Of a stretch of DNA of 64,000 nucleotides, positions 42,571 through 61,880 are shown one piece after another. Location: sequence record MN091626.1. One strand, given 5' to 3'. Under the pieces are notes generated by a model. It did no database searches. It saw only the letters and a list, made by a program, of their open reading frames with translations, and had not been told where the DNA came from. A program made the position numbers and the translations under genes. Within the stretch, counting starts at the first letter, position 1. Every line of letters starts with the position of its first letter.

Positions 42571-43482
42571 TTATCTAAAACGTTTTTTGTATTCTTCTTC
42601 ATATTTAGCATTGACATCTGAAACTTTAATATCTTTACCATCATCTGTTTTAAAGTTATCTTTATCAATTTCTTCACCTTTAATTACTTCTTTATCTTCA
42701 TTTTCTACTTTAGCCACCATAGCAATATGAGGTGGTACAAATGATGCTTGTTTAACTGTTTCCATTTTAGCATTATGAATACGACCTTTAATTAATTTAC
42801 GAGAGAAATGTACATTTTTCATAGTTAATGTTTTACCTTTGACTAATGCATTTTCTCTAAGTGCATCAATTTCATTAATAATATCACTTAATTCTTTTTT
42901 AGAATATCTATTATCTTCTAGATTTGCTACTAAGTCATTAATAAGTTCTTCTTTAGTATAAGATTTCTCACTGAATTTTTTAACATTTTTCTTTCTACTA
43001 GTCATTTTCTTTTTACCAACCTTCTGATTTGATTTAGTTTTTGTACTTTGTTTCTTTTCTTTTAATACTGGGTTCTTAACTTCTTCTTTAGTCTCTTCTT
43101 GCTTAGTTTCTACTTTATCTTCTTCTTGTTTAGTTTCTTTTTGCTTAATCTCTTTTGCTTTCTCTGGATTTAAACCTGAAGCTGTTACAGTTACTTTATC
43201 ATAAGAACTTTCTGTTGGAATATCCTTAAGATTAATTTCAACATCTTTAAGTTCATCTGAATTGATGAAAATTTCTTTTTTATCATAATTAATCTTAATA
43301 ACATCATCATCTTCAGGAATTAAAACTAAATTCTTTCTGTCATATTTCTCTGGAATAGTTTCGATATCAAATGTAATTGTATCTCCTTCATATCCTTGTT
43401 CTTCTGATAATTTAATCTTAGCTGACTCTAATACAGTTAAATCCTCTTTTTCTTTTGTAACTTTCTTTCTTGTAATTGCCAT
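42571..43482 (-). CDS. HU/TF1-like DNA-binding domain fused to an N-terminal Ig-like region
   Basis: C-part 'TKEELINDL...SKKELSDIINEI...LVKGKTLTM...GRIHN' parallels HU; ATG 43482 is 10 nt from AAGGAG. Confidence 0.55.
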   Translation of the reverse strand: MAITRKKVTKEKEDLTVLESAKIKLSEEQGYEGDTITFDIETIPEKYDRKNLVLIPEDDDVIKINYDKKEIFINSDELKDVEINLKDIPTESSYDKVTVTASGLNPEKAKEIKQKETKQEEDKVETKQEETKEEVKNPVLKEKKQSTKTKSNQKVGKKKMTSRKKNVKKFSEKSYTKEELINDLVANLEDNRYSKKELSDIINEIDALRENALVKGKTLTMKNVHFSRKLIKGRIHNAKMETVKQASFVPPHIAMVAKVENEDKEVIKGEEIDKDNFKTDDGKDIKVSDVNAKYEEEYKKRFR

Positions 43483-43555
43483 ATCCAAATCTCTCCTTAT
43501 ATAAAATAATTTGAAGCTAATATTCTTACTAACTTCATTAAAATAATATATATTT
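43476..43555 (-). repeat. Copy 1 of an identical promoter + RBS/start cassette (inverted relative to 49664-49758)
   Basis: 21-mer aaatatatattattttaatga (43555-43535) and 23-mer aaggagagatttggatatggcaa (43498-43476). Confidence 0.9.
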
Positions 43556-43834
43556 ATATTATTAATTGAAGTTTATAAATTTTTATTATTAGAGTTTTTC
43601 TATGATCCAGAGTATTAATATATTTTATTAATTAAAAATATATTTATTAATAATATTTATATTAATATTAATTATTAAATTTATAATTACTTACTAATAT
43701 AAGTAATATATTAATACAAAATTTTAAAAATTTATAAATAAAAATTTTATAAAATCTGAATAACCAATTTATATTAATTAAAAAATCAATGACGTTTAAA
43801 AATATAATAAATTTGATTGAGGTGTATTAAGATA

Positions 43835-49663: not shown

Positions 49664-49758
49664 AAATATATATTATTTTAATGAGATTGAGATGGAATTA
49701 ATCTTAATACTCAAAAAATAAAAATTTTTAATTACAAGGAGAGATTTGGATATGGCAA
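49664..49758 (+). repeat. Copy 2 of the identical promoter + RBS/start cassette
   Basis: 21-mer at 49664-49684 and 23-mer at 49736-49758. Confidence 0.9.
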
Positions 49759-51296
49759 AAGTAAAATACTCACAAACAAAATTATTGGTAAGAGGAGCAT
49801 TTAGATCAGATGAAATTATCAACGTAGTTGGTGATGGCGGAATTGGTAAAACACAAATGATGAGAGATATTGCAGAAGAAGATAATATGAACTTCATTAC
49901 TATCGCTGCAAATAACCTTAAAGAAGGGGAATTATCTTTACCAATGTTATCACAAAAAGATAATGAAGTTATCTATGCTCCAATGGATAAAATTAAGTTA
50001 GCTAATAGTCTTTTTGAGAGATATAAAGAGTATCAAAGAGAAGGTGGAAAACAATATTCACGTAAAGACCTTTCTTTAAAATCTGTTGATGAATTAAAAG
50101 AAATTTATGTGAAATTGACTGGTAAAGATGTTGTTGATTATTATGAGGATACTCATGAAAACTATGTTAATAAAGTATTTAACAAAGCTAGAGTTAAAAA
50201 TGTTAAATATAGTAAAAATGATTTAATGAAAAAATCATTTGATGAATTAAATGAAATCTTTGTAGAATTAACTGGTAAAGAATTAAGAGATAAAATTGGT
50301 AAAGGTTTCTATATCAAAGAAATTTTAGAAGCAGTTCCAAGACCTTATACTCTATTATTTATTGACGAAATTGGACGTACAGACCAACAAGTACAATCAG
50401 AGTTAATGAACTTCTTATTAGAACGTCAAGTAAATGGTTATCATTTACCACCTAACGTTAAGATTGCATTAGCACAAAACCCATCTTCAGACATGCCAGG
50501 ATTTGAAGACTCAGAATACGCAGCAACTTCTATGGATAACGCAGTAAGTTCTCGTATTACATTTGTACACATGGTTCCTGATATTGAAAGTTGGGTAGAC
50601 TTTGCTACTAAATATAAAGATGGTTCAGAAAAGCAAAATATTCATCCATCTATTGTTGAGTTCGTAACTGAAAAAGAAAGTACTGAATATTTATTCAGAC
50701 CTCATAAAGAAGCTGGTAAAGACTTCAATGATACTAACCCACGTTCTTGGGAAATGATTTCTAATATGTTATATGTATTAGAAGAAGATGATTTATTTAA
50801 ATTCTCTAATAGTGAAGAAGAGAAACGTAAGAAGAAAGATACTTTACAATTCTTCACTGAAGGTAAAATTAATAGTGATTTAGCAAACTTATTTGTTAAA
50901 TTCTATATTGAAAAACAAGCTAAATTACCTCGTCCAAGTGATATTTTATTTGAATATGATAAAGGTAAAATGGTTCCTCGTAAAGAATTAGCTAAACAAC
51001 ACATTGAAGCTATTGAAAGTCAATCAACTATTAGACAATTAACATTGAAAACTTCAATGATTAACTATCTTAAAAATAATCCTGATTTAGCTGAAGAACA
51101 AGTTATTCAAATTGCTGTAGAAGCTTTATTATTAGGTAAAGTTGAAACTAATGCTACACCAATTAGATTAATTTCTAGACTTTCAGAATCTACTGAAGAG
51201 TCAGACCAAGAATTATATGAGAAATTCACTGATAATGAATTATACAGTGATAAAGCATTTGCATTATACGAACAAATGGTAGGAAGCTTAGGATAA
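49752..51296 (+). CDS. MoxR-like AAA+ ATPase
   Basis: Walker A GDGGIGKT, Walker B LLFIDEIGR, 'IALAQNP', 'MDNAVSSR', 'NPRSWE'; ATG 49752 preferred on RBS spacing. Confidence 0.88.
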   Translation: MAKVKYSQTKLLVRGAFRSDEIINVVGDGGIGKTQMMRDIAEEDNMNFITIAANNLKEGELSLPMLSQKDNEVIYAPMDKIKLANSLFERYKEYQREGGKQYSRKDLSLKSVDELKEIYVKLTGKDVVDYYEDTHENYVNKVFNKARVKNVKYSKNDLMKKSFDELNEIFVELTGKELRDKIGKGFYIKEILEAVPRPYTLLFIDEIGRTDQQVQSELMNFLLERQVNGYHLPPNVKIALAQNPSSDMPGFEDSEYAATSMDNAVSSRITFVHMVPDIESWVDFATKYKDGSEKQNIHPSIVEFVTEKESTEYLFRPHKEAGKDFNDTNPRSWEMISNMLYVLEEDDLFKFSNSEEEKRKKKDTLQFFTEGKINSDLANLFVKFYIEKQAKLPRPSDILFEYDKGKMVPRKELAKQHIEAIESQSTIRQLTLKTSMINYLKNNPDLAEEQVIQIAVEALLLGKVETNATPIRLISRLSESTEESDQELYEKFTDNELYSDKAFALYEQMVGSLG

Positions 51297-51304
51297 CAAT
51301 TATA

Positions 51305-51333
51305 GATAATGGAGATTATTAGTCTCCATTATC
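51305..51333 (+). terminator. Hairpin between AAA and VWA genes
   Basis: gataatggagat / gtctccattatc followed by a T-rich run. Confidence 0.65.
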
Positions 51334-51360
51334 TTCATTTATTTTTTTATAATTAGGAGA

Positions 51361-53298
51361 GTGAATTTGATAATGAATGATAATAGAACAATTAAAGTAA
51401 TTAGAAAAGAAATATTAGACGAAGTACAAGAATCGATTGTAAATGATAGACAGTTAGATAAAAAGAAATTAACAAAGCTTGGAGAAGAATTAATTGAAAA
51501 TAGTATTTTTGTGTTGTATACTTCTGATGTTGATATTTATGGAGTAATGTTAATGACTGTAGAAAAGATCATTGACATTGAAATTCCAGAACCAACTTTC
51601 TCAGTATTTGATGAAGAAAAAGGTTATAAGATTGGTATTAATCCAGTGTTATTAGCCACTATGGTTGATAAAGATGAAGAAATAGTTTCTATGTTCCTAC
51701 ATGAAGTTATCCATGTAGCTCATGGACATTTAATTGAATTTAGAATGTTAAGAAATAAAGAAGATTCTCAATTAAAAATGTTAAGTCACTTAGGAATGGA
51801 TTTATCAGTATTTGAAATTGAAGAAGACTTCCAATTAGGTAAACGTGAAGCTAATACAAGTAAAAAAGTTTTACCTGAAATTGCACCTAATGTAGATAAG
51901 ATTGAAAAGTATATTCAAGATAAATTTAATAAAACAAATTTTAAATTAAATCATAATGATGCTTCTCACTATTATATTAAACAATTAGTAGATATCTACA
52001 AAGAAAATAATGAAGAAGATATGTTTGATTCTATGGGTGAATCTATGCAAAATATGATTCAAGAATCTTCAGAAAAACAGAATGAACGTGATGAAGATTC
52101 ATTGAATGAAGAAAATGAAATGTTGAAAGACATGTTAGAAGATTTAAAAGACATTGAAGATAAAAATGATTTATCTAGTAAATTAGAAGATAATAAACTA
52201 GAAGAAAACAAAGTTGATGATTTTGAAAATAAAGCTCAAGATTATATGAATAAATTAGATGAAATGAATCAAAATGATGAAGAGAATAGTAATGATACTC
52301 AAAATCAGAAAAATATAGAAGAGAAAATGAATGATTTACTAGATTCAATGAGAAATAATACTTCAGATAATAAATTTAATAGTAAAGATAATAATGATTT
52401 ATCTGATAAAATACAAGAAATGAAATCAGATATATTAAATCAAATGATTCAGAATAATATGCAACAGGGTTCTCAAGGTATGCAAGGTGAAGATAGTGGA
52501 ATGCAAGATGGACAAAATGTTTCTGATATGGGAAGTAACATGACTATGTCATCTTCTTTAGATGGAAATTCTAAATATGCAGATAAATTTGATTCCAATC
52601 CTCTTGAAGGAGATGCTACAGAGGAAAGAATGAAAGACCAATTGTATGATTTATTAGAAAGTGCTAGTAGTAATAGTCGTGGTGATACACCTAATCATAT
52701 TAAAGAACAAATTGAAATTCTAAAACGTAAACCTAAGATTAAATGGCAAGATTATCTTAAAGCTAAAGTAGGTAAAAAACGTTCTTCTAGTACGAAAACT
52801 ATTTTAAGAAGAAATAGAAGACAACCTTATCGTAGTGATGTACGTGGAACTTTACCTGGTAGAAAATTAGGTAAAGTATTTGCGGCTATTGACACTTCAG
52901 GTTCAATGGGTAGAAATGAAATTGAAGAAATTATTGCTGAATTGTATTATATTAGTAGTGATATGAAAATTGATTTAGTTTTATTATTCTTCTCAACTGG
53001 TGTTGAAGAAGTAGTTGAAGTAAACAGACCAAATCAATTTAATGATTATGTAATGGGTCGTGGCGGAACTTACTTCAGTTCTGTATTTGATTTCTTAAAT
53101 GAAACTGATAACAAACGTAAATATTCAGTATCAAAAGATGATACGCTATTATTCTTCTCAGATGGTTTTGGAGAACCTGAGGTGGAATACGGTGTATTAA
53201 CTGATGTTGTTTGGGTTATTACTGAAGATGAAAATAATCTTTCAGTTAGAGATCCAAAAGGTAAAGTACTAAAATTAGAAATAGATAATAAAAGATAA
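51361..53298 (+). CDS. DUF2201-like HExxH metallopeptidase + acidic linker + VWA domain
   Basis: 'FLHEVIHVAHGH'; MIDAS 'IDTSGSMG', 'GRGGT', 'FFSDG'; true start probably TTG 51367 or ATG 51373. Confidence 0.85.
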   Translation: MNLIMNDNRTIKVIRKEILDEVQESIVNDRQLDKKKLTKLGEELIENSIFVLYTSDVDIYGVMLMTVEKIIDIEIPEPTFSVFDEEKGYKIGINPVLLATMVDKDEEIVSMFLHEVIHVAHGHLIEFRMLRNKEDSQLKMLSHLGMDLSVFEIEEDFQLGKREANTSKKVLPEIAPNVDKIEKYIQDKFNKTNFKLNHNDASHYYIKQLVDIYKENNEEDMFDSMGESMQNMIQESSEKQNERDEDSLNEENEMLKDMLEDLKDIEDKNDLSSKLEDNKLEENKVDDFENKAQDYMNKLDEMNQNDEENSNDTQNQKNIEEKMNDLLDSMRNNTSDNKFNSKDNNDLSDKIQEMKSDILNQMIQNNMQQGSQGMQGEDSGMQDGQNVSDMGSNMTMSSSLDGNSKYADKFDSNPLEGDATEERMKDQLYDLLESASSNSRGDTPNHIKEQIEILKRKPKIKWQDYLKAKVGKKRSSSTKTILRRNRRQPYRSDVRGTLPGRKLGKVFAAIDTSGSMGRNEIEEIIAELYYISSDMKIDLVLLFFSTGVEEVVEVNRPNQFNDYVMGRGGTYFSSVFDFLNETDNKRKYSVSKDDTLLFFSDGFGEPEVEYGVLTDVVWVITEDENNLSVRDPKGKVLKLEIDNKR

Positions 53299-53306
53299 TT
53301 CAAATT

Positions 53307-53338
53307 ACGTCAATGGATATTAATTTATCCATTGACGT
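53307..53338 (+). terminator. Intrinsic terminator/hairpin
   Basis: acgtcaatggata / tatccattgacgt. Confidence 0.7.
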
Positions 53339-53375
53339 TTATATTTAAAATTTTTTACTTAAAGGAGATTAAACA

Positions 53376-55439
53376 ATGTTAAAAAAGACTACAGAAAATG
53401 AATTAGAAAAGTTATTCAATGTCACTATTTATAATGAAGAATTTTCTAATTTAAAACCTATGTATAATAGAAAAGATACTGAAACTAGAACTAAATTAAA
53501 TGACAATCAAAATTCTAGAGTGTATGAGAATTTAATAAATTTCATTAATTATTCTAAAGCAGGAATGACACACATGTTTTTAACTCGTTCTAATAAATAT
53601 AGAGATAAATATATTGATTTTCTAAGAAATAGACTTGGTAAGGAAGATTTATTAGATGAGGTTGAATTTGAATATACAGATAGATATTTCAGATCTTTCA
53701 TATATAATATAGATATAATTAGAAGAAGTGAATATCAAACACATCAATCTATAGAAAATGACTCTAAATTAGAAGATTCATTCTTATTAAGAAATGGAAA
53801 TACAAATATAGATAGCTTTAAAACGGATAATGGTTTATCTATAGAATTTTTAGATAAAGATGTAAAGAAAGATTTTTTAGATAAGAACAAACAAATTAGT
53901 TTAGAATCTTTGCTAGCTATCGATACGATGGTGTCTAATTCATTAAGAAAGAAATGGTTAAAATCAATTGAAAAAGAAGAATTACCTGATATGAATATTA
54001 TATTTAAAGAAGTTCCAGAAGTAGTAATTATACTAGCAAACAGTATATATGAAAGATCAAATTTCAAATTATCATATGTAGATAGAAGTGTTATTAATAT
54101 ACACGCAGACGTTTCAGATGTTTTGGAATCAATACTAACTTTAACTTCTAATTTTAATTATAAATTAATATTAGATTTAATAGATGAAGATTACTTAAGT
54201 AAAAATTTAAATCATTTCAAAGCTTCTGAATTTTCTTTATCTGACAATAATGACATTGATAATATATTTAGTATAATCGGAATTATTAAAAAACAAACGG
54301 ACGTTATTAATAAATTTATAGAAAAAAGCAAATCAGATAATCTAGAAGACAATATTAATTTAATAATTAAAGAAAATGAAATAGATGATGACTTTGGAGA
54401 AATATTAAAAGTTTATATTGATAGTGTATTATCTAAATTTAGAGAATATATTGAAGATGATACCAATATATTAAAAGATTCATCTAAGGTTTTAATAGGT
54501 GAAAATCTATTTGGTTTCTTTATGAAATTAGATGATCTCGAAATTTTAATGATTAGAAATATATACAGAGTTTTAGATAGTAATGTATATAATCCTGTAA
54601 TCAGAGATGTTAAAGAATCACAAGAAAAAGTTATGAATGGAATAGTAGATTATTTTAAAAATAATACTAAAAAATTATCTTTAGATTTATCTAATATCGA
54701 TATAAGTAGATTGAAAGATAGTTCTTTCACATTATTAAACGATTTCATAACAAATGGAGAAGTAAGTAATCTTCGTATGAAACCTAATGAAGCTAATATA
54801 GAGTATTTCTATAAATTAAGTGTGGATAAAGAATTAAACCGTGACATATTAAATAGTAATATACAATATATGAAACAGGAATTATTAAAAGGTTTTAATG
54901 ATGATTCTAAAATGACTTCGAATGCTATTATTGAATTTGATAATTTTAATATTAATTTTGCTGTAATAGAAAATAATTCATATAATAATGAAATAGAAAT
55001 AATGATGCAAGGAGTTACTTTTAAGAAAAAATTAACTGATGAGGATATTGCTACTATCTTTTTATATTCACATAAAGAAGTTAGTATATATCAAGACAAA
55101 AAATTAGTTATCATGGATAGAAATTATTTCTCTAGAAGAGGTATAAATAAATTTATAAATAATATGAATAATGTCTTCACTGATTTAGATGGAGAAAGTT
55201 TATCTAAATATATGTCTTTAATTTATAATTTATTATCTTTATCAGATAATTCTTTTGAGGAAGATAAAGCAATTTATAATACTCTATATTACAATAAATT
55301 TGAATATATTAATAAAGAAAATGAGTTAAAAGTTGATAGTTATATTAATATGATTAATAATAAAGATGTAACAGATGATTTTAAAAAGAAATTTAAAAAG
55401 GTAAGATCTAAGTATTTAGTTTCTAGAATATTTATTTAA
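53376..55439 (+). CDS. Hypothetical 687-aa accessory protein
   Basis: AAGGAG RBS; ends LVSRIFI; no family recognised. Confidence 0.65.
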   Translation: MLKKTTENELEKLFNVTIYNEEFSNLKPMYNRKDTETRTKLNDNQNSRVYENLINFINYSKAGMTHMFLTRSNKYRDKYIDFLRNRLGKEDLLDEVEFEYTDRYFRSFIYNIDIIRRSEYQTHQSIENDSKLEDSFLLRNGNTNIDSFKTDNGLSIEFLDKDVKKDFLDKNKQISLESLLAIDTMVSNSLRKKWLKSIEKEELPDMNIIFKEVPEVVIILANSIYERSNFKLSYVDRSVINIHADVSDVLESILTLTSNFNYKLILDLIDEDYLSKNLNHFKASEFSLSDNNDIDNIFSIIGIIKKQTDVINKFIEKSKSDNLEDNINLIIKENEIDDDFGEILKVYIDSVLSKFREYIEDDTNILKDSSKVLIGENLFGFFMKLDDLEILMIRNIYRVLDSNVYNPVIRDVKESQEKVMNGIVDYFKNNTKKLSLDLSNIDISRLKDSSFTLLNDFITNGEVSNLRMKPNEANIEYFYKLSVDKELNRDILNSNIQYMKQELLKGFNDDSKMTSNAIIEFDNFNINFAVIENNSYNNEIEIMMQGVTFKKKLTDEDIATIFLYSHKEVSIYQDKKLVIMDRNYFSRRGINKFINNMNNVFTDLDGESLSKYMSLIYNLLSLSDNSFEEDKAIYNTLYYNKFEYINKENELKVDSYINMINNKDVTDDFKKKFKKVRSKYLVSRIFI

Positions 55440-55441
55440 AT

Positions 55442-55486
55442 ATATATTATATAATTGAGTTGATAATTGAACTTATCAACTCAATT
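55442..55486 (+). promoter_or_regulatory. Early-type ATATATTAT motif followed by 14-bp leader hairpin
   Basis: atatattat 55442-55450; aattgagttgataa / ttatcaactcaatt; then AGGAG RBS. Confidence 0.55.
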
Positions 55487-55511
55487 TAATTTTTAATTAA
55501 TAGGAGATGAA

Positions 55512-56699
55512 ATGGATATGAGTAAAGCAATAAAAGATTTATTTATCAATTACAATATATCTTATATTGAAGTTAATGAAGATCATGAACTTAATGAAAT
55601 TGATAAAGAAGAATTATTAAAAATATTAGATTTTGATATTAAATTTGAAAAGGAAGAAATTTTAATAAGTGATAATATTAAAATAAATAATTTTAACGGT
55701 AATAAGTTAATAAATTTTGTATTTAATTATTACTATACAGATAATGAATCACTAAAAGTATTTTTAAAAGACGTTATCAAAGATATTATTATGTATGGAT
55801 ATAAAGAAGATAGAAAAATAAGTCTAAATATAAATCAATTACCTTTAGTATTTTATATAAATAAATTTTGTAAAGATAATGACATTAAAAATATTAAATT
55901 CTTTTATACTTTTAAAAATTCTTATGGGAATTTTTCATTTGGTTTATTAAAAGAAGAACATCTAGATGAATTTATTGATGATATAGAAGAAATAAGCAAT
56001 AATAAGTTCTTCAATTTAAATAGAGAATTTTTAGATACTAAATTATTGATTAATGGAGATAAAAAGAAATTTATGAAGCTAATATCTAGTTTAATAGATT
56101 TGGATATGTCGCATAAGAGTAATATATTTAAATTAACAATGATAAATTATTTTTATAAATTATTCAATATTCATATTAATAGTAAAGAAGATTTAGAGTA
56201 TGCAGATGAATTAATGAAGTCTAAAATAGATAGCGTTAAATATGATGAATTTAATAAATACTATATATTTGAAAGATCCATAATTGGTATAGATACATTA
56301 TATGAAAATGAACTCCTAGGATACAATACAAGAATAAACCATAATTATTTTACTGATAAAATACAAAAAGTTGAGGATGAAGATAAAGTTAAACATCTTT
56401 CAAAAATCAGTTTCTTTAAATCAATAGATGACATTTATAAAGAAGCATTATTCTTGTTATCCTTTGAAACAGCCAATGAATATACAGACATTGCAGTTAA
56501 AGAAGTATTAAGATTAATTGAAAATAATTTTACAGAAAATCAGAAAAAACAATTTGTTAAAGCATATATGAGTATCAAAGATAGTTCATTTAACGTTTCA
56601 AATGATAAATATAATCAAACATCTACACTTGTTAAAATGTCTAAAGGAAAATTAAAGAAATTAATTATGAATGAAACAGTTAAAAAGACATTTATTTAA
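55512..56699 (+). CDS. Hypothetical accessory protein
   Basis: AGGAG RBS; ends TVKKTFI. Confidence 0.65.
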   Translation: MDMSKAIKDLFINYNISYIEVNEDHELNEIDKEELLKILDFDIKFEKEEILISDNIKINNFNGNKLINFVFNYYYTDNESLKVFLKDVIKDIIMYGYKEDRKISLNINQLPLVFYINKFCKDNDIKNIKFFYTFKNSYGNFSFGLLKEEHLDEFIDDIEEISNNKFFNLNREFLDTKLLINGDKKKFMKLISSLIDLDMSHKSNIFKLTMINYFYKLFNIHINSKEDLEYADELMKSKIDSVKYDEFNKYYIFERSIIGIDTLYENELLGYNTRINHNYFTDKIQKVEDEDKVKHLSKISFFKSIDDIYKEALFLLSFETANEYTDIAVKEVLRLIENNFTENQKKQFVKAYMSIKDSSFNVSNDKYNQTSTLVKMSKGKLKKLIMNETVKKTFI

Positions 56700-56713
56700 A
56701 GGAGAATCCGCTT

Positions 56714-57427
56714 ATGTTAGTTAAAGAAGAAAAATTAAAAAATAGAAATGATATTAGAATAGACCATATTATAAGTATTAATTTAGATGATCCTTCTGCA
56801 CTTAATATGGTTTCATTTCAATTATTAATAGAAAGTAATATTCTGAGTTGTTATATTAATAACAACTTGGATACTACTTTATTTACTAAAAAAGAATTAG
56901 ATAAATATAATAAATTCATAGATTTTGCTATTGATAATTTTGAATCAAATGGATTATTTATAAATAAAAAACCGGATGAATTTCTAACTGGTTTAATAAG
57001 AAAAGCTTCTATTTCTAGATTATTTAAAATGATTGATCCAATTGATAAAACTATCAGTAATGAAAATTTATTTATCACTAGATTAAAAAATATTAGACAT
57101 AATATAAATGAAACAGATAGTAAAGATTTAGCTTATTTCTTATACACCAACTTTAGAGAAGATGTTCCGTTAGATAGATTAAAAGGTTTAATGTCCAATC
57201 CACATTTAACATCATTATTTGAGTATTTAATGAATGGCAATTTAATAATGGAGATTGACGAGCAATTATTAAATAAATGGATTATGTTTATTGATTATGA
57301 AATAGATGATATTAAAGGACCTATTTATCATAGATTAAGACATAGTTTAGTTAATGTAATTAATAAGTATAATAATATACAAGAAGCTAAAGGTTATTTA
57401 GGGTATGAAAGATTAGAATTAGAATAA
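56714..57427 (+). CDS. Hypothetical accessory protein
   Basis: AAGGAG RBS; ends GYERLELE; a relic of its 3' end recurs at 58754-58818. Confidence 0.65.
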   Translation: MLVKEEKLKNRNDIRIDHIISINLDDPSALNMVSFQLLIESNILSCYINNNLDTTLFTKKELDKYNKFIDFAIDNFESNGLFINKKPDEFLTGLIRKASISRLFKMIDPIDKTISNENLFITRLKNIRHNINETDSKDLAYFLYTNFREDVPLDRLKGLMSNPHLTSLFEYLMNGNLIMEIDEQLLNKWIMFIDYEIDDIKGPIYHRLRHSLVNVINKYNNIQEAKGYLGYERLELE

Positions 57428-57460
57428 ACTTAAAAAGTTTAGTGAGAAGGGAAATTTTGA

Positions 57461-58120
57461 ATGAAAAAATTTAGAGATGAATTAATAAATCACTATACAA
57501 ATTTATTGAGATTCAACGATGATTCTTTTTATTATAGATTAAAAATTAATTATTTGAATTTCGATTTCTCTAAAGATGTAAATTTAAGAAAAAATAATGT
57601 GTTTAAATTAAATTATAAAATCAGCTTTTTCCTATATTTTAAAATTTTAATAAAAGATTTTATTTCAAATAATTTAGATGAAAATGGTGTATCATTATTA
57701 TTTTCAGATAGTGTTAATAATAATAATTTTATTTCTACATTATTTGTTAAAAATAATTCTGATATTGAATTGAAACTAGATTTGGGTGCGTATTATGAAC
57801 TAGATGAAACTAAAATAGTTCTAATAGATTTAAATGAAGAGTTTAATATAGAATATTCAGATGATAGTATTATAATTCATACAGATGAAGATAATTTTGA
57901 AAATGTAGTTTATTCTATTCTAAACAAAATCAAATTCGTCTTAGAAGGAAATATATATGCATTTAGCATATCTTTATTTGGCAATGGAAAAATAGGAGAT
58001 AGTAATATATTTTATTTAGAAGAGATTGAAAATATATTTAACTCTAGAAAAAATAGTATAATTGAAGAGCTTTCTGAAAGTGAAGTTAAAAAATATAAAA
58101 TCAAAGAAGGGTTCAAATAG
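57461..58120 (+). CDS. Hypothetical accessory protein with C-terminal tag
   Basis: Ends KIKEGFK. Confidence 0.6.
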   Translation: MKKFRDELINHYTNLLRFNDDSFYYRLKINYLNFDFSKDVNLRKNNVFKLNYKISFFLYFKILIKDFISNNLDENGVSLLFSDSVNNNNFISTLFVKNNSDIELKLDLGAYYELDETKIVLIDLNEEFNIEYSDDSIIIHTDEDNFENVVYSILNKIKFVLEGNIYAFSISLFGNGKIGDSNIFYLEEIENIFNSRKNSIIEELSESEVKKYKIKEGFK

Positions 58121-58122
58121 TA

Positions 58123-58734
58123 ATGGGTGATATTAAATTTAATGAAGAATATATGTCAGTTAAAATTTATAAGTTAATTAATTTGTTTGAGTTTCAACAA
58201 ACAACTCGTAAAAGAGCATTTTCAAACCATAATTCTGAAAGTGATGAAAATGAGCTTAATATGTATATAGGTAAAAATGACAATAAAAATATGATTGACA
58301 TTTTTACTAGTTCTTTCTTTTTATACAATCAATTTAAAGATGTTTGCAGTTTAGTATTTAACAATGGTAATACTATTATTGCAGAAATTGAGATATTAAA
58401 TAAAAATAAATTGTCAATTGAAATTAATTCAGAAATCTTAATTGTTGATAGTGAAATTAAAAATTTCATTATCAAAAATGATTTTAGTGTAGGAGATGGC
58501 TTCTTAGGCTTAATTATTGAAAATGATAAAGAAAAAATTCTTAAATTATTTTTAGAATCATTGTCTGATAGTTATTTTTGGATAAACAAGAAAAGAAGTT
58601 TAAATATATCTGATTCTAAAAAAATTAAATTTAAAAAATATTTAGAAGATTTATATAAAATGAAAGATTTTTATAGTAAAGAAATCACTGAAAAAGAATA
58701 TAAAGAAAATATAGTAAAAGATAATTTCAAATAA
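58123..58734 (+). CDS. Hypothetical accessory protein, paralog of 58826
   Basis: C-term LEDLYKMKDFYSKEITEKEYKENIVKDNFK. Confidence 0.65.
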   Translation: MGDIKFNEEYMSVKIYKLINLFEFQQTTRKRAFSNHNSESDENELNMYIGKNDNKNMIDIFTSSFFLYNQFKDVCSLVFNNGNTIIAEIEILNKNKLSIEINSEILIVDSEIKNFIIKNDFSVGDGFLGLIIENDKEKILKLFLESLSDSYFWINKKRSLNISDSKKIKFKKYLEDLYKMKDFYSKEITEKEYKENIVKDNFK

Positions 58735-58753
58735 TATAATCCCAATACTTATT

Positions 58754-58818
58754 AATGTAATTAACAAATTTAAAAGATTAAAGATTATTTAGATTACGAA
58801 AGATTAGAACTGGAGTGA
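58754..58818 (+). pseudogene. Frameshifted relic of the 3' end of a 56714-like gene
   Basis: aatgtaattaacaaa...tatttagattacgaaagattagaactggagtga aligns to 57353-57427 with a net 10-nt deletion (NVINK...YL.YERLELE*). Confidence 0.75.
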
Positions 58819-58825
58819 TATTTTA

Positions 58826-59467
58826 ATGGAAGAGATTTATCTTGATAAAAGATTTGATAGTGAATATTTTAAAATAAAAACTAGAGATATGATAAACTCT
58901 GTAAAATTTACTAAAGAACCAAACTTTGATTTAATTATAAATAACCGTAAAGAAGAAAAAATTTTATATACTAAAAATGACAGTATTAGAAATCTATTTA
59001 TTGAATCTTTTATCTTGTATTTAAATAATATTACAGACGTTTATACATTTAGTATATCAATCAGTAATATTAAGTTAATTTTTAGTTTAAGATACAATCA
59101 TACGAATAAAGATACCAAATTTTTAATTTATATAATAGAAAATGATAAATTTAATTATGAAAAAGATGTATCTGAATTAGAAAAAATATTAAATGACATA
59201 TCTTCTTTAGTAAATAAAGAATACTATATATCTAAAGGTAGTTTTATAATAGACTATTTAGATATAGAAAAAATTGATAAGATATTGTATTACATTAATA
59301 AATTAGATGATCTTCGTATAATGTTAGATGATTCAGAAAAAGAAGGAAAATCGTATTTAAGTTACAACTCTTTTCTTAAAGAACTTTATTTAAAAAGAAA
59401 CTTATATTCTAAAAGTATTACTAAAAAGGAATATACTGATAATTTAGTTAAAGAAAATTTTAAATAA
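58826..59467 (+). CDS. Hypothetical accessory protein, paralog of 58123
   Basis: C-term LKELYLKRNLYSKSITKKEYTDNLVKENFK. Confidence 0.65.
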   Translation: MEEIYLDKRFDSEYFKIKTRDMINSVKFTKEPNFDLIINNRKEEKILYTKNDSIRNLFIESFILYLNNITDVYTFSISISNIKLIFSLRYNHTNKDTKFLIYIIENDKFNYEKDVSELEKILNDISSLVNKEYYISKGSFIIDYLDIEKIDKILYYINKLDDLRIMLDDSEKEGKSYLSYNSFLKELYLKRNLYSKSITKKEYTDNLVKENFK

Positions 59468-59471
59468 TATA

Positions 59472-59506
59472 ATCCCAATACCTATTACATCAATAGGTAT
59501 TGGGAT
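59472..59506. terminator. Bidirectional terminator
   Basis: atcccaatacctatt / aataggtattgggat between convergent genes. Confidence 0.85.
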
Positions 59507-59522
59507 AAATTTAAATTATTTT

Positions 59523-59798
59523 TTATTTCATGCTGTCTAATTCAGCTAATTTTAATTTAGCTTTAGTTGCATATTTTTGACGAATTATGTCACGCCATTT
59601 TTTACGAGCACGAGCAGCTTTTTGATATTTAAAGTAAATTGGATCTTGAGCTTCTTTAGCTGCAACTAATGCTAATTGGTTTAATCTACGTTTACGTTTA
59701 GTACGTTCATCTAAACGCATGATATTTTGTTCACGTAAAAGAGCTTCATCAGTTGCTTGCATAATTTGCTCTTCTAGTGGAGTAATGTTATTTTTCAT
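59523..59798 (-). CDS. Small basic, highly expressed helical protein (possibly virion)
   Basis: High-expression codons (cgt, gct); AAAGGAAG RBS supports ATG 59798; near-consensus late promoter AACA-TATTTC-TT at 59860-59849. Confidence 0.65.
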   Translation of the reverse strand: MKNNITPLEEQIMQATDEALLREQNIMRLDERTKRKRRLNQLALVAAKEAQDPIYFKYQKAARARKKWRDIIRQKYATKAKLKLAELDSMK

Positions 59799-59945
59799 AA
59801 TGGAAGATCTTCCTTTCAATTATTTTTATTATTCATTATAATGATTATAAGAAATATGTTTTATTTAAGAAATATGAAAAAATTATTGAACCATAATAAC
59901 TTATCTTATATAAGTATGAATCTATAAGGAGATGAGAATTTATTT

Positions 59946-61880
59946 ATGTCTAATCAAGATAATAAATATGAACGTAAAAGAGCTATAACAGGATATTTAG
60001 AAAATTTAATCAAATTAATTAAAATAAGAAAACCTGATATTGATAATGAAAAGTTAATTAATACTTGTAGAGAGTATATTAAAAAACATGTAGATCCAGC
60101 TTTAATAGAAATATCTGGACAAAAAATGAATGTGGATACAACTTTAAGACAAATTATAGATAATAATTTAATTGTAACTGGTTCTGGTTCTATTTATCAG
60201 CCTCAATCACAAAGAAAAAATTTAAATGCAGACATGTTAAAAGACTTTATAGATTCTCGTAAAGTAGCTAAACATAATATGTTTATATATAAAGGTAAAG
60301 ATGATGTTTTACATGATAAATATATGAACGAACAAAAAACAATTAAGATCTTGGCTAACAGTTATTACGGTGCTATGATTCAAAAGAATAGTACATTCTA
60401 TGATGCTAATTCAGGTCCAGCAACTACTTATAGCGGTGTTGATATTGTAACTACTTCAGCAATAGCTTTAGAAAGATTTATAGGTGGAAAAATATTCTTT
60501 ATGAAAATTGATGAAATATATCATTATATATTAAGAATAATTAATGAAAAATATGAAGATCATGATATTAAGATAAAATCAATTCCGACTGATAAAGAAA
60601 TTTTAGAAGGTTTAGTTTCTAATGTTGAAGAAGATTATAGTGAAGAAGAATATCTTAAATTAGAAGAAGTATTTAGTAAATTAAGTCAAGAAGATAAAAA
60701 TAAGGTATATTTCAAAAATAACTTATTTGGTTTAATTGATCATACTGATATATTTGAGAATAAAATTAGTAAAATGACTGGTAGAGAAGATTTCTTAGAT
60801 CCAAACGAACCACCTGAAGATATGATTCCATTATTAGATGAATTATTTGAAATATTAAAAGATTGGGTTATATACAACTATCAAGATTATAATAGAATGT
60901 ATAGAATGAATTACAAGAAACGTAGAAGTGTTCTCACAATTGACACAGATTCAAATTTCGTACACTTAGATCCATTATACGAAAAAATGAAATCATTAAA
61001 ACCTGAAGATTTTCCTCTAGCAGAAAATGGTTTAGAAGATAAATTAGAAGAACGTGTAGGTAATATATCTATTATTAACTATCAAATAACTAAGTTATTA
61101 GAATTATCTTACTATGGATTCTGTAAGGATGTAGGATTAGAAGAAGAACATTTAGGCTTAATATCAATGAAAAATGAATTTTTACTTGATAAACAATTAA
61201 CAACAGATAAAAAGAAAACTTATGCATCATCAGTAATTCAACAAGAAGGTAATTTAATTCAACCTCCAGATTTAGATGTTAAAGGTATGGCTATTAGAAA
61301 AGTTAATACTAATAAACGTATTAGAGAATTATTTACTGAAATATTACAAAAAGATATTTTAGAAAATAAAACTGGTGTAGATCGTATTAAGATAATACGT
61401 AAATTTAAAGATATTGAAGAAATGATTAAGAAATCATTAGATAATGGAGAAATCGAATTCTTAAAACCATTTAAAGCTAATAATGCTGAAGTTTATAAAG
61501 ATCCTTATTCTCAAATGGCTTATAGAGCTGCTTTAGCATGGAATATAATGTTCCCAGAAAAGGAAATAGCACTACCTGCTAAGATATTAGCAGTTAAATT
61601 AAATATTAGTACATTTGGTGATATTAAGAATAAAATAACTGATGAAGATACTTTAAATAGATTTAGAGAAGTATTTAAGAATGAAAGTTTAGTTAAAAAT
61701 GGTTTAAATGTAATTGCAGTCGAAGGTAATACAATTCCTGAAGAGTTTAGACCTTTTATTGACTATGATAGTATGATTGAAGATCATATTAAACCAGGTA
61801 AAGATATTATTGAATCTATAGGAGTTAGAGTATTGGAATCTTCAAATAGCTCATCTGTATCTAATATGATTAAATTCTAA
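59946..61880 (+). CDS. Divergent family-B DNA polymerase chain (split phiKZ/AR9 type)
   Basis: Motif B 'KTIKILANSYYG', motif C 'IDTDSNF', 'KKTYA', 'LDVKGM'; no exonuclease or motif A recognised. Confidence 0.82.
   Translation: MSNQDNKYERKRAITGYLENLIKLIKIRKPDIDNEKLINTCREYIKKHVDPALIEISGQKMNVDTTLRQIIDNNLIVTGSGSIYQPQSQRKNLNADMLKDFIDSRKVAKHNMFIYKGKDDVLHDKYMNEQKTIKILANSYYGAMIQKNSTFYDANSGPATTYSGVDIVTTSAIALERFIGGKIFFMKIDEIYHYILRIINEKYEDHDIKIKSIPTDKEILEGLVSNVEEDYSEEEYLKLEEVFSKLSQEDKNKVYFKNNLFGLIDHTDIFENKISKMTGREDFLDPNEPPEDMIPLLDELFEILKDWVIYNYQDYNRMYRMNYKKRRSVLTIDTDSNFVHLDPLYEKMKSLKPEDFPLAENGLEDKLEERVGNISIINYQITKLLELSYYGFCKDVGLEEEHLGLISMKNEFLLDKQLTTDKKKTYASSVIQQEGNLIQPPDLDVKGMAIRKVNTNKRIRELFTEILQKDILENKTGVDRIKIIRKFKDIEEMIKKSLDNGEIEFLKPFKANNAEVYKDPYSQMAYRAALAWNIMFPEKEIALPAKILAVKLNISTFGDIKNKITDEDTLNRFREVFKNESLVKNGLNVIAVEGNTIPEEFRPFIDYDSMIEDHIKPGKDIIESIGVRVLESSNSSSVSNMIKF

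Follow-up and report, generated by a model that had tools for sequence, protein, structure and literature searches.

The closest described relatives of the gene pair studied here are phage modules of the N4 gp24/gp25 type, which join an ATPase of family phrog_1297 to a VWA protein of family phrog_1314. The core set of N4-like phages comprises 14 genes, gp24 and gp25 included, and N4 itself has both in its middle class (PMC4193335). The same domain pair was described by Iyer et al. in a comparative genomics study published in 2021 (PMC7824862). Genes g028 and g029 of phage AR9 are also of this type.

Several cellular systems are built from similar parts. CbbQ-CbbO, a Rubisco activase, and RavA-ViaA each combine a MoxR-class hexamer with a VWA adaptor that bears a MIDAS and picks the target, but they act on metabolic enzyme complexes and lack both a zincin and any detectable family link in sequence to DUF2201. 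In NorQ-NorD, for which cryo-EM structures exist (9qh4-9qhg), NorD has no peptidase domain and inserts iron into nitric oxide reductase; the ring acts by twisting the VWA partner, with no threading of a substrate (PMC13036017). Midasin (Rea1) likewise consists of an AAA_5 ring with a MIDAS domain, but all six of its AAA modules are fused in one giant eukaryotic polypeptide, and its task is to remove ribosome assembly factors.

Here, we analyzed a 64,000-nucleotide stretch of sequence record MN091626.1 (hereafter the window). It is ~99.8% identical to PALS_2/DC4/S6, a jumbo phage of Staphylococcus that is related to Bacillus phage AR9/PBS1, and the PALS_2 record (99.8% identical to the window) was used for all genome-wide work. 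A search of RNA runs found 9% of the window's sampled words in one tick metatranscriptome, whose contigs show neither start sites nor levels.

A preliminary description of the region at 49752-59467 saw in it a self-contained unfoldase-protease machine with its own clients or adaptors. The reading that we favor, and consider probable, is that the first two genes form an early-transcribed module of a MoxR-class ring ATPase and a zincin-VWA partner, and that the genes downstream are no dedicated accessory set.

The ATPase

The first gene (49752-51296, + strand) is preceded by a ribosome-binding site (GGAGAG, 49738-49743) and encodes a MoxR-class (AAA_5-type) AAA+ ATPase of 514 aa (phrog_1297, E 5e-42). 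All catalytic motifs are present, namely Walker A (GDGGIGKT), Walker B (LLFIDE), sensor 1, the arginine finger and sensor 2, and the preliminary description was right both about the gene and about its intact Walker motifs. In 51 homologues, G30-I31-G32-K33, D205-E206, sensor-1 N243, R268 and R331 either never vary or reach at least 90% conservation.

Profiles were required for comparison with the PDB, as single-sequence searches with the ATPase and with its VWA partner returned nothing useful. The profile of the 51 ATPase homologues found its best PDB match in the AAA modules of Midasin (E 1.7e-17). PF07728 (AAA_5) is matched by 47 of these homologues and PF07726 (AAA_3) by 34. Taken by itself, the window ATPase scores 15.6 bits against AAA_5 (cut-off 22) and 17.6 bits against AAA_3 (cut-off 27), and passes the Pfam cut-off for generic AAA only.

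The AF2 model of the ATPase (pLDDT 89) has its highest whole-chain structural match in NorQ (Z 14.0, rmsd 3.6, 220/254 residues); CbbQ gave a Z of 13.1 (rmsd 3.1-3.5), and both scores are tied with those of dynein AAA modules. The separation of these MoxR and dynein matches (Z 13-14) from ClpC (12.6) and HslU (12.2) is slight. After strand 2, residues 53-75 form a low-confidence loop in the model, followed by a clade-specific insert; this is the region in which the helix-2 insert and pre-sensor-1 hairpin of MoxR-class ATPases would be read. The pore-loop position (L-K-E-G-E) is occupied by K57-E58-G59-E60, which is at least 90% conserved among the ATPases.

The insert (49977-50336, + strand; ~120 aa) lies between Walker A and Walker B and includes a helix-loop-helix repeat (Y-S-x-x-[DE]-L ... 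[DE]-E-L-x-E-I ... L-T-G) that occurs twice. It is present in all six Staphylococcus-clade homologues (43-100% identity), is missing from the ~375-aa relatives and is modelled as helical with pLDDT 86-97. It has no match in Pfam; by inspection, it may be SAP/HeH-like.

The zincin-VWA partner

The second gene (51373-53298, + strand) encodes a DUF2201 zincin-VWA protein of 641 aa. It matches phrog_1314 over its full length (E 5e-34) and PF09967 with 32.9 bits (cut-off 26.4; residues 508-639 of the 645-aa ORF), which bears out its earlier identification as a metallopeptidase-VWA protein. The HExxH and MIDAS motifs, previously reported as intact, are so. HExxHxxxxH spans residues 110-119 (HEVIH and H119) and is kept in 50-55 of 60 homologues, and the MIDAS residues (D507-x-S509-x-S511, T566 and D597) are found in 60/60 aligned homologues.

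The wide retention of the zincin motif argues for a working metal site in the peptidase. Characterized MoxR-VWA systems are all remodelling or metal-insertion factors and none is a protease (PMC13036017, PMC9976466), so one may suppose that the peptidase is a relic and that the pair serves only in non-proteolytic maturation, loading a metal or cofactor into a phage enzyme as NorQD, CbbQO and the chelatases do. We consider this extremely improbable, given that ~85-90% of a diverse set of 60 homologues, and every member of the Staphylococcus clade, keep HExxHxxxxH together with D143.

In the AF2 model (pLDDT 81), the VWA domain resembles the integrin I domain (Z 12.6), the NorD VWA domain (10.3) and the MDN1/Rea1 MIDAS domain (10.3-10.6). 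Directly before it lies a basic RRxRRQP hairpin (residues 479-485), and conservation among VWA partners is at least 90% at R479, R482, R483, P485 and R487. The pair shares with NorQ-NorD the MIDAS pattern DxSxS-T-D and the two-gene layout, but sequence identity is only 11-14% and, unlike NorD, the window protein has a zincin. The 46-residue finger that NorD carries inside its VWA domain is not evident in the window protein, in which the basic hairpin is a candidate equivalent.

The peptidase half is split by a second clade-specific insert (52015-52662, + strand; ~215 aa) that is rich in D, N, E and S. It measures 209-216 residues in the Staphylococcus clade, whereas most of the 60 homologues have 36-95 residues at this place, and it is modelled as a long helical bundle (helices 241-369). 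With the domain split in this way, the window protein has no direct match to PF13203. This family is matched by its homologues AR9 g029 (56 bits), P0079 and RG2014_036 (133 bits), and the N-terminal part of the window protein aligns with AR9 g029 (E 1e-5). A homologue search with the full protein was swamped by the low-complexity insert and returned 6 matches. The exhaustive search was therefore made with the VWA half only, which matches 2,499 clusters at 50% identity.

Compared with the N4-type module, the window pair has the same families, gene order and motifs. The Staphylococcus proteins are larger (514 aa versus ~360-400 aa for the ATPase, and 641 aa versus ~405-475 aa for its partner) because of the two inserts, the two-repeat helical one in the ATPase and the acidic helical one of ~215 aa in the peptidase half.

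Distribution of the gene pair

Families phrog_1297 and phrog_1314 are both present in the window, as neighbors on the same strand. The two genes are also adjacent or nearly so in the Staphylococcus jumbo phages, in AR9, in Schitoviridae phage RG-2014 (which carries the same Pfam pair), in the coliphage Asteriusvirus A4 and on two Clostridia chromosomes. That the genes stay adjacent from jumbo phages to Clostridia chromosomes supports the view that the ATPase and the VWA protein work as a pair. AR9 g028 and g029 are direct homologues of the window pair (tblastn E 1e-15 to 1e-22). The statement that MoxR/VWA pairs occur in jumbo phages applies to those of both Staphylococcus and Bacillus. Judged by sequence, the two-gene module is not new as a kind, and the window holds what we take to be the Staphylococcus jumbo-phage copy of a widespread module.

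Promoters and timing of expression

The ATPase gene is preceded by a predicted early (virion RNA polymerase) promoter, P1 (49664-49683, + strand; AAATATATATTAT-N6-G), whose predicted start is the G at 49683. P1 is an exact match to the AR9 early consensus, which was determined by dRNA-seq (PMC5312081). A second exact match with G at +7, P2 (55438-55457, + strand), overlaps the stop codon of o687, the third gene of the block. Only three exact copies of the consensus occur in the window, and all three lie immediately 5' of gene starts. The ATPase homologue AR9 g028 has a primary dRNA-seq start site from an early-type promoter, and expression of g028/g029 in AR9 was 88/77 at 5 min, 464/595 at 20 min and 378/465 at 40 min. 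The proposal of an early cassette stands on the promoter matches at 49664 and 55438 and on the start site of the AR9 homologue. Both genes of the pair are probably transcribed early by the injected RNA polymerase of the phage, a timing that for this phage we read from the promoter matches.

That the module is expressed early in phages supplied with an RNA polymerase of their own suggests that it acts before virions are assembled. A different role was proposed by Iyer et al. for group 2.2 jumbo phages (PMC7824862), in which the pair would be a virion-assembly chaperone and processing protease. The early promoter would then only secure its presence before assembly. These authors cite an archaeal-virus MoxR-vWA system that is needed for tail development (PMC7824862); the pair adjoins structural genes in Asteriusvirus A4, and its mRNA is still high at 40 min in AR9. 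One ATPase peptide was also detected in a DC4 virion preparation, which is easier to reconcile with a late or virion role than with an early one, but this was one peptide with one spectrum, GroEL and UvsX were found in the same preparation, and its authors want confirmation (PMC10638138). We regard an assembly role as unlikely, since in AR9 the homologue is driven by an early promoter, with expression evident by 5 min, the N4 pair belongs to the middle genes and these phages have their own prohead protease.

Terminator-like hairpins follow the ATPase gene (51304-51334, + strand; a terminator is annotated here in Machias and MarsHill), the VWA gene (53307-53338, + strand; annotated in MarsHill) and o687 (55453-55486, + strand). 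A two-way terminator-like hairpin with a 16-bp stem closes the block (59472-59506). P2 divides the block into two early units, and together with the hairpins after the first three genes it indicates that the block is not one tight operon.

Genes downstream of the pair

Six genes follow the pair, all on the + strand. The first, o687 (53376-55439), is fixed in the Staphylococcus jumbo-phage clade, to which it is restricted, and evolves fast: identity to SA1 is 36%, whereas the ATPase reaches 94%. Its conserved parts are the N-terminal ~60 aa and the C-terminal tail (..K-Y-L-V-S-R-I-F-I), and the metagenome relative L008 has two copies. It has no family, PDB or Atlas match. In PALS_2, o687 is annotated as "RNA polymerase omega subunit family", an assignment that we rejected, as no library supports it. 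The next gene, o395 (55512-56699), is syntenic and ends in ..L-K-K-L-I-M-N-E-T-V-K-K-T-F-I; across the clade, its body has 25% identity versus 65% in the final 16 residues. The third, o237 (56714-57427), is syntenic and conserved (54-77% identity), ends in ..G-Y-E-R-L-E-L-E without a tail and has no family or Atlas match. A conserved 266-aa protein with DUF4116 repeats, encoded 5' of the Clostridia pairs, was considered as a relative of o237 and rejected (BLASTP E 1.5). These three genes hold their position clade-wide, and o687 and o395 diverge to ~30% identity yet retain their tails.

The remaining three are tailed early genes for proteins of ~210 aa. Gene o219 (57461-58120; ..K-I-K-E-G-F-K) occurs in only some relatives: it is found in MarsHill, LY01 and AH12 and is missing at the same position in SA1, Machias and L008. 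Among the relatives compared, which did not include DC4 and S6, o203 (58123-58734; ..E-K-E-Y-K-E-N-I-V-K-D-N-F-K) is found in PALS_2 only. The last gene, o213 (58826-59467; ..K-K-E-Y-T-D-N-L-V-K-E-N-F-K), is like o203 in the last ~50 aa only. The spacer 5' of o213 holds a non-coding leftover of o237's 3' end (58745-58814, + strand), seen in direct repeats D5, D10 and D16, which are 81-86% identical to 57351-57423. The copy number of such ~210-aa tailed genes across relatives is 3, 2, 1, 1, 0, 0 and 0.

For all eight proteins of the block, searches of NCBIfam and PADLOC returned no significant family, and thus no sign of a known defence system. Comparison by hhalign of the families of o687, o395, o237, o219, o213 and AR9 g030-g036 revealed no relationship (probabilities of at most 2.5%), although the alignments are shallow and a distant kinship is possible. 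The six genes had been described as co-oriented and mostly tagged members of one block. They are co-oriented and five of the six (all except o237) are tailed, but their distribution among relatives marks them as a mixed set rather than a dedicated accessory set. On the same comparison, o219, o203 and o213 appear as mobile members of a genome-wide population of tailed early genes, which lie between o237 and the DNA polymerase gene, at an apparent hotspot of recombination.

C-terminal tails and the gene pair

The tail that ends these five ORFs has the form [VI]-x-x-x-F-[KI]. In PALS_2, 37 of the 280 ORFs are tagged in this way; they form about eight clusters, and 31 of the 37 lie outside the block. 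One may ask whether the pair reads the tail as an address or degron, so that tagged early proteins would be its clients or adaptors, for instance for timed removal or activation. The tailed genes o687 and o395 directly follow the pair, and their tails are their best-conserved parts (65% versus 25% in o395). The arrangement recurs in AR9, where g030, g031 and g033-g036 follow the pair and all bear a different tail of AR9's own, while g016-g027 upstream have none; in both lineages, the genes directly 3' of the pair thus carry the lineage's own tail. This adjacency may point to a functional link, and it counts against the reading favored here. Early promoters are common to the pair and the tagged genes. 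[quoted passage not shown]

We nevertheless find it distinctly unlikely that tagged proteins are clients or adaptors of the pair. With 31 of the 37 tagged genes in other clusters, the adjacency of pair and tails may reflect only a shared early region, and neither homology nor co-variation connects the tails with the pair. The pair is also a core module in tag-less phages (RG-2014 and the N4-like core list, PMC4193335) and is present on bacterial chromosomes. In a shared-tail test, RG-2014, which has the pair, had the tail in 0/77 genes versus 38/280 in PALS_2, so the pair does not appear to need the tag. Co-occurrence of AAA/VWA and tagged genes in relatives, proposed earlier as a check, is thus seen in the Staphylococcus and AR9 lineages but breaks down in RG-2014. 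The notion of a self-contained machine with its own clients or adaptors finds no support in genes that are lineage-specific, of which three vary in copy number, while 31 of the 37 tagged genes lie elsewhere. The more specific idea that the tail of the ~37 early proteins is a docking signal for the phage MoxR ring or its VWA/MIDAS partner, like the C-termini of NorD and CbbO, with AR9-type phages using their own tail in the same way, seems to us very unlikely.

Proposed mechanism

For the favored early module of ring ATPase and zincin-VWA partner, we propose a mechanism modelled on NorQ-NorD. The ATPase would assemble as a hexamer, as in the solved NorQ-NorD complex, and the hexamer would grip a finger of its VWA partner, for which the basic RRxRRQP hairpin is the best candidate. 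Opposite the hairpin would lie the acidic K-E-G-E loop, which takes the pore-loop position in the ATPase; we infer this pairing from conservation alone. The MIDAS metal would bind a carboxylate of the target protein, and ATP-driven twisting would remodel the target and hand it to the zincin site for cleavage. The timing of expression makes a part of the capsid a less likely target than a host protein or an early protein or complex of the phage.

Proteases of the Clp, Lon and FtsH type likewise couple an ATPase to a peptidase, and their AAA core fold is similar (ClpC Z 12.6, HslU 12.2). However, they belong to a different AAA+ clade; the window pair has no aromatic-hydrophobic pore loop, and its peptidase sits on a separate VWA adaptor without a chamber. 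The term unfoldase-protease, if meant in the Clp sense, therefore does not suit the pair: the pore-loop position holds the conserved K-E-G-E in place of an aromatic-hydrophobic loop, and NorQD does not thread its substrate (PMC13036017).

Significance

If the tails did serve as docking signals, the pair would be a tag-directed hub of remodelling or proteolysis, encoded by the phage and governing how active or how long-lived a whole class of early proteins is, and two puzzles would be explained together. The AAA_5 and zincin-VWA module is among the most widely conserved phage gene pairs that lack an assigned function: it is core in N4-like phages and also occurs in several jumbo-phage lineages and on Firmicutes chromosomes. 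As the S. aureus jumbo phages can be cultured and their host is tractable, they offer a practical system for finding the target of the pair.

The pair is a member of a known phage module

The MoxR-class (AAA_5-type) ATPase (49752-51296, + strand) and the DUF2201 zincin-VWA protein behind it (51373-53298, +) have close counterparts in other jumbo phages. By tblastn, both are 99.5-99.8% identical to proteins of the Staphylococcus jumbo phages PALS_2 (in which positions are those of the window offset by 124,000), vB_SauM-UFV_DC4 (DC4) and S6, 71-80% identical to those of a second Staphylococcus clade (Machias, PB50 and AH12) and 27-32% identical to those of the Bacillus phages AR9 and PBS1. The G+C content of the window is about 25%. 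AR9/PBS1-type phages, to which these belong, possess virion and non-virion multisubunit RNA polymerases (PMC5312081; bioRxiv 10.1101/2020.12.14.422802).

Genes of the two families adjoin, or stand two small genes apart, in AR9 (g028/g029), in the Schitoviridae phage RG-2014, in Asteriusvirus A4, where structural genes adjoin, and in two Clostridia chromosomes with non-prophage surroundings. In both Clostridia contigs (L017, 7180-10493; L019, 7190-10575) a conserved 266-aa DUF4116-repeat protein precedes the AAA_5 and DUF2201 proteins; its two copies share 45% identity, and the three genes look like a cellular module. N4 gp24 and gp25 (vWFA) are in the 14-gene core of N4-like phages and are of the middle class (PMC4193335). 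A comparative-genomics study by Iyer et al. (2021; PMC7824862) had already described the domain pair. The ATPase is named 'MoxR-like ATPase' in the PALS_2 record and the VWA partner 'metallopeptidase' in the DC4 paper (PMC10638138). The pair is already known as a kind, and the locus adds to this phage module a member with two clade-specific inserts.

ATPase and VWA partner

The ATPase gene starts at the ATG at 49752, downstream of GGAGAG, as in the PALS_2 annotation. The protein contains Walker A (GDGGIGKT) and Walker B (LLFIDE) motifs, and 51 aligned ATPase homologues show little or no variation in the P-loop, D205-E206, N243, R268 and R331. It matches phrog_1297 (E 5e-42). In Pfam, only the generic AAA family exceeds the cut-off when the protein is searched alone; among the 51 homologues, 47 match AAA_5 and 34 match AAA_3, the MoxR family. 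The best PDB match of the family profile is Midasin (E 1.7e-17), with McrB among the next. A confident AlphaFold2 model (pLDDT 89, pTM 0.82) has McrB, NorQ and CbbQ as top Foldseek matches. Aligned with VIA-align, the model scores Z 14.0 against NorQ (rmsd 3.6, 220 of 254 residues), 13.1 against CbbQ, tied with dynein AAA modules, and 12.2-12.6 against ClpC and HslU. The assignment to the MoxR class is supported by sequence and context, whereas structure alone separates the candidates weakly. Between Walker A and Walker B lies an insert of about 120 residues that contains two helix-loop-helix repeat copies. All six clade members keep it, even at 43% identity, and relatives of about 375 aa such as AR9 g028 lack it. 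The insert matches no Pfam family; by eye, its repeat resembles SAP/HeH motifs, a similarity that serves only as a lead.

In the VWA partner, the zincin residues H110-E111-x-x-H114 and H119 are invariant in the clade and AR9 and are kept in 50-55 of 60 diverse homologues, and all 60 carry the MIDAS residues D507, S509, S511, T566 and D597. PF09967 (DUF2201) is above the Pfam cut-off, and phrog_1314 spans the full length of the protein. PF13203 has no direct Pfam match here because an insert of about 215 residues, rich in D, N, E and S and modelled by AlphaFold2 as a helical bundle, splits the peptidase domain; it matches strongly in the insert-free homologues AR9 g029 (56 bits) and RG2014_036 (133 bits), and the N-terminal part of the window's protein aligns with AR9 g029 at E 1e-5. 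[quoted passage not shown] The family is large: the VWA half is matched by 2,499 clusters at the 50% identity level (E up to 1e-3).

Comparison with NorQD suggests how the two proteins may interact. [quoted passage not shown] Outside the catalytic residues, conservation in the ATPase family is highest at L56-K57-E58-G59-E60, which occupies the pore-loop position, and in the partner family at a basic motif (R479-x-x-R482-R483-Q-P485-x-R487, at least 90% conserved), modelled as a hairpin immediately before the first VWA strand. Both elements would fit the NorQD scheme: by analogy, the L-K-E-G-E loop would contact the basic hairpin, and the zincin domain may act as the effector in place of the NorD N-terminal domain.

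Predicted early transcription units

In AR9, dRNA-seq gave the early-promoter consensus as AAATATATATTAT-N6-G(+1) (PMC5312081). Exact matches occur at 49664 (+), before the ATPase gene, at 55438 (+), before o395 (55512-56699, +), and at 43555 (-), and a scan of the window found no further exact copy. In PALS_2, a genome scan gave 33 copies with at most one mismatch; the MarsHill authors report the same motif upstream of 29 genes. An identical 20-nt promoter (including the N6 spacer TTTAAT) with the start cassette GGAGAGATTTGGATATG is found at 49664-49754 (+), leading into the ATPase gene, and inverted at 43480-43557 (-), leading into a gene at 42571-43488 (-).

A hairpin followed by a T-run lies 3' of the ATPase gene, the VWA gene, o687 (53376-55439, +) and o213 (58826-59467, +), and hairpins of this type are labelled terminators in the records of relatives. 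Because of the internal hairpins and the second early promoter, the sequence is best read as two early units with internal hairpins rather than one tight operon. AR9 g028 has a primary transcription start at an early promoter, and g028/g029 expression values rise from 88/77 at 5 min to 464/595 at 20 min and stand at 378/465 at 40 min (PMC5312081 supplements). The sole RNA run found was a tick metatranscriptome, in which a small fraction of the words sampled occurred. In the DC4 virion proteome the ATPase is represented by one peptide and one spectrum, alongside GroEL and UvsX, a detection that the authors say needs confirming.

Downstream genes and their flank

Behind the pair stand o687, o395, o237 (56714-57427), o219 (57461-58120), o203 (58123-58734) and o213, all on the + strand. 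We compared the block across six Staphylococcus phages and three metagenome contigs. The order ATPase, VWA, o687, o395, o237, small (-) gene and DNA polymerase is held down to 55% ATPase identity, with o687 present twice in one metagenome relative (L008). Between the window and SA1, identity is 94% for the ATPase, 85% for the VWA protein and 88% for the polymerase; it is 36% for o687, 31% for o395 and 77% for o237. The number of genes of about 210 aa behind o237 varies: three in the window and PALS_2, two in MarsHill, one in LY01 and AH12, and none in SA1, Machias and L008. A remnant of the o237 3' end (81-86% identical) in the spacer before o213 is a recombination scar. Both o687 and o237 are confined to this clade, and library, PDB and Atlas searches named none of the six genes. 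The label 'DNA-directed RNA polymerase, omega subunit family protein' given to o687 in PALS_2, and repeated in the DC4 paper, finds no support in Pfam, NCBIfam, PHROGs or Atlas. The Clostridia DUF4116-repeat protein was considered as a relative of o237 and rejected as unrelated.

Between two early (+) units lies a small basic gene on the opposite strand (59523-59819, -; a 98-aa ORF, 91 aa in the DC4 annotation). CGT and GCT codons are frequent in it, the SA1 record labels it 'PBI_PBS1_41', and its identity in relatives (91-96%) exceeds that of their ATPase (71-94%). Judged by locus number, it is probably UFVDC4_00019, a hypothetical protein of 91 aa and pI 10.2 detected in the DC4 virion proteome by one peptide (24% coverage). 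The gene may encode an abundant late virion protein that associates with DNA. The DNA polymerase gene (59946-61880) has a single unbroken reading frame of 644 aa, whose match to the divergent family B polymerase model falls mainly in the model's C-terminal half. In Machias and MarsHill its annotation consists of two to three joined exons, and the LY01 region has a transposase gene; the polymerase gene seems to be frequently targeted by mobile elements.

The shared tail belongs to a genome-wide set

Five of the six downstream proteins, all except o237, share the C-terminal tail [VI]-x-x-x-F-[KI]. Orthologous tails terminate in F-I, F-K, F-L or F-R, which makes F-I and F-K variants of a single tag type. 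Across the clade, the last 16 residues of o395 are 65% identical versus 25% for the body; for o687 the values are 40% and 26%, with the N-terminal 60 or so residues conserved.

The preliminary description correctly reported the ORFs, the motifs and the early cassette. It also proposed a self-contained machine with its own clients or adaptors. The gene identities and the pairing stand; the dedicated clients do not agree with the distribution of the tags. In PALS_2, the core tail ends 37 of 280 ORFs, all (+), forming about eight clusters under early promoters, and only six of the 37 lie between the VWA gene and 62454: most tagged genes stand away from the pair. An alignment-free test, in which a gene counts when its 16 C-terminal residues agree at 7 of 16 positions with those of three or more other genes, gave 38 of 280 genes in PALS_2 and none of 77 in RG-2014. 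As RG-2014 has the pair, the pair does not need such tags. We regard it as unlikely that the tagged proteins are clients, even though partner C-termini are known to dock on MoxR rings and the pair directly adjoins tail-bearing genes in two lineages, both of which are suggestive. In the second lineage, AR9, the six genes that follow the pair directly (g030, g031 and g033-g036; L002, 12330-18591) all have AR9's own, different tail, ..S-x-[EK]-R-[VI]-x-x-[YL]-E-A-x-x-[IL]-L-x-x-[LI], which is found in none of the twelve genes upstream of the pair (g016-g027).

The polymerase C-terminus, ..N-M-I-K-F, also resembles the tail endings. In B-family phage polymerases such as those of T4 and RB69, the clamp-binding peptide is C-terminal. 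Because the tail-like ending of the polymerase sits at this position, the sliding clamp is another candidate reader of the tails.

The pair stands beside early genes that evolve fast and form part of a tail-tagged set spread across the genome.
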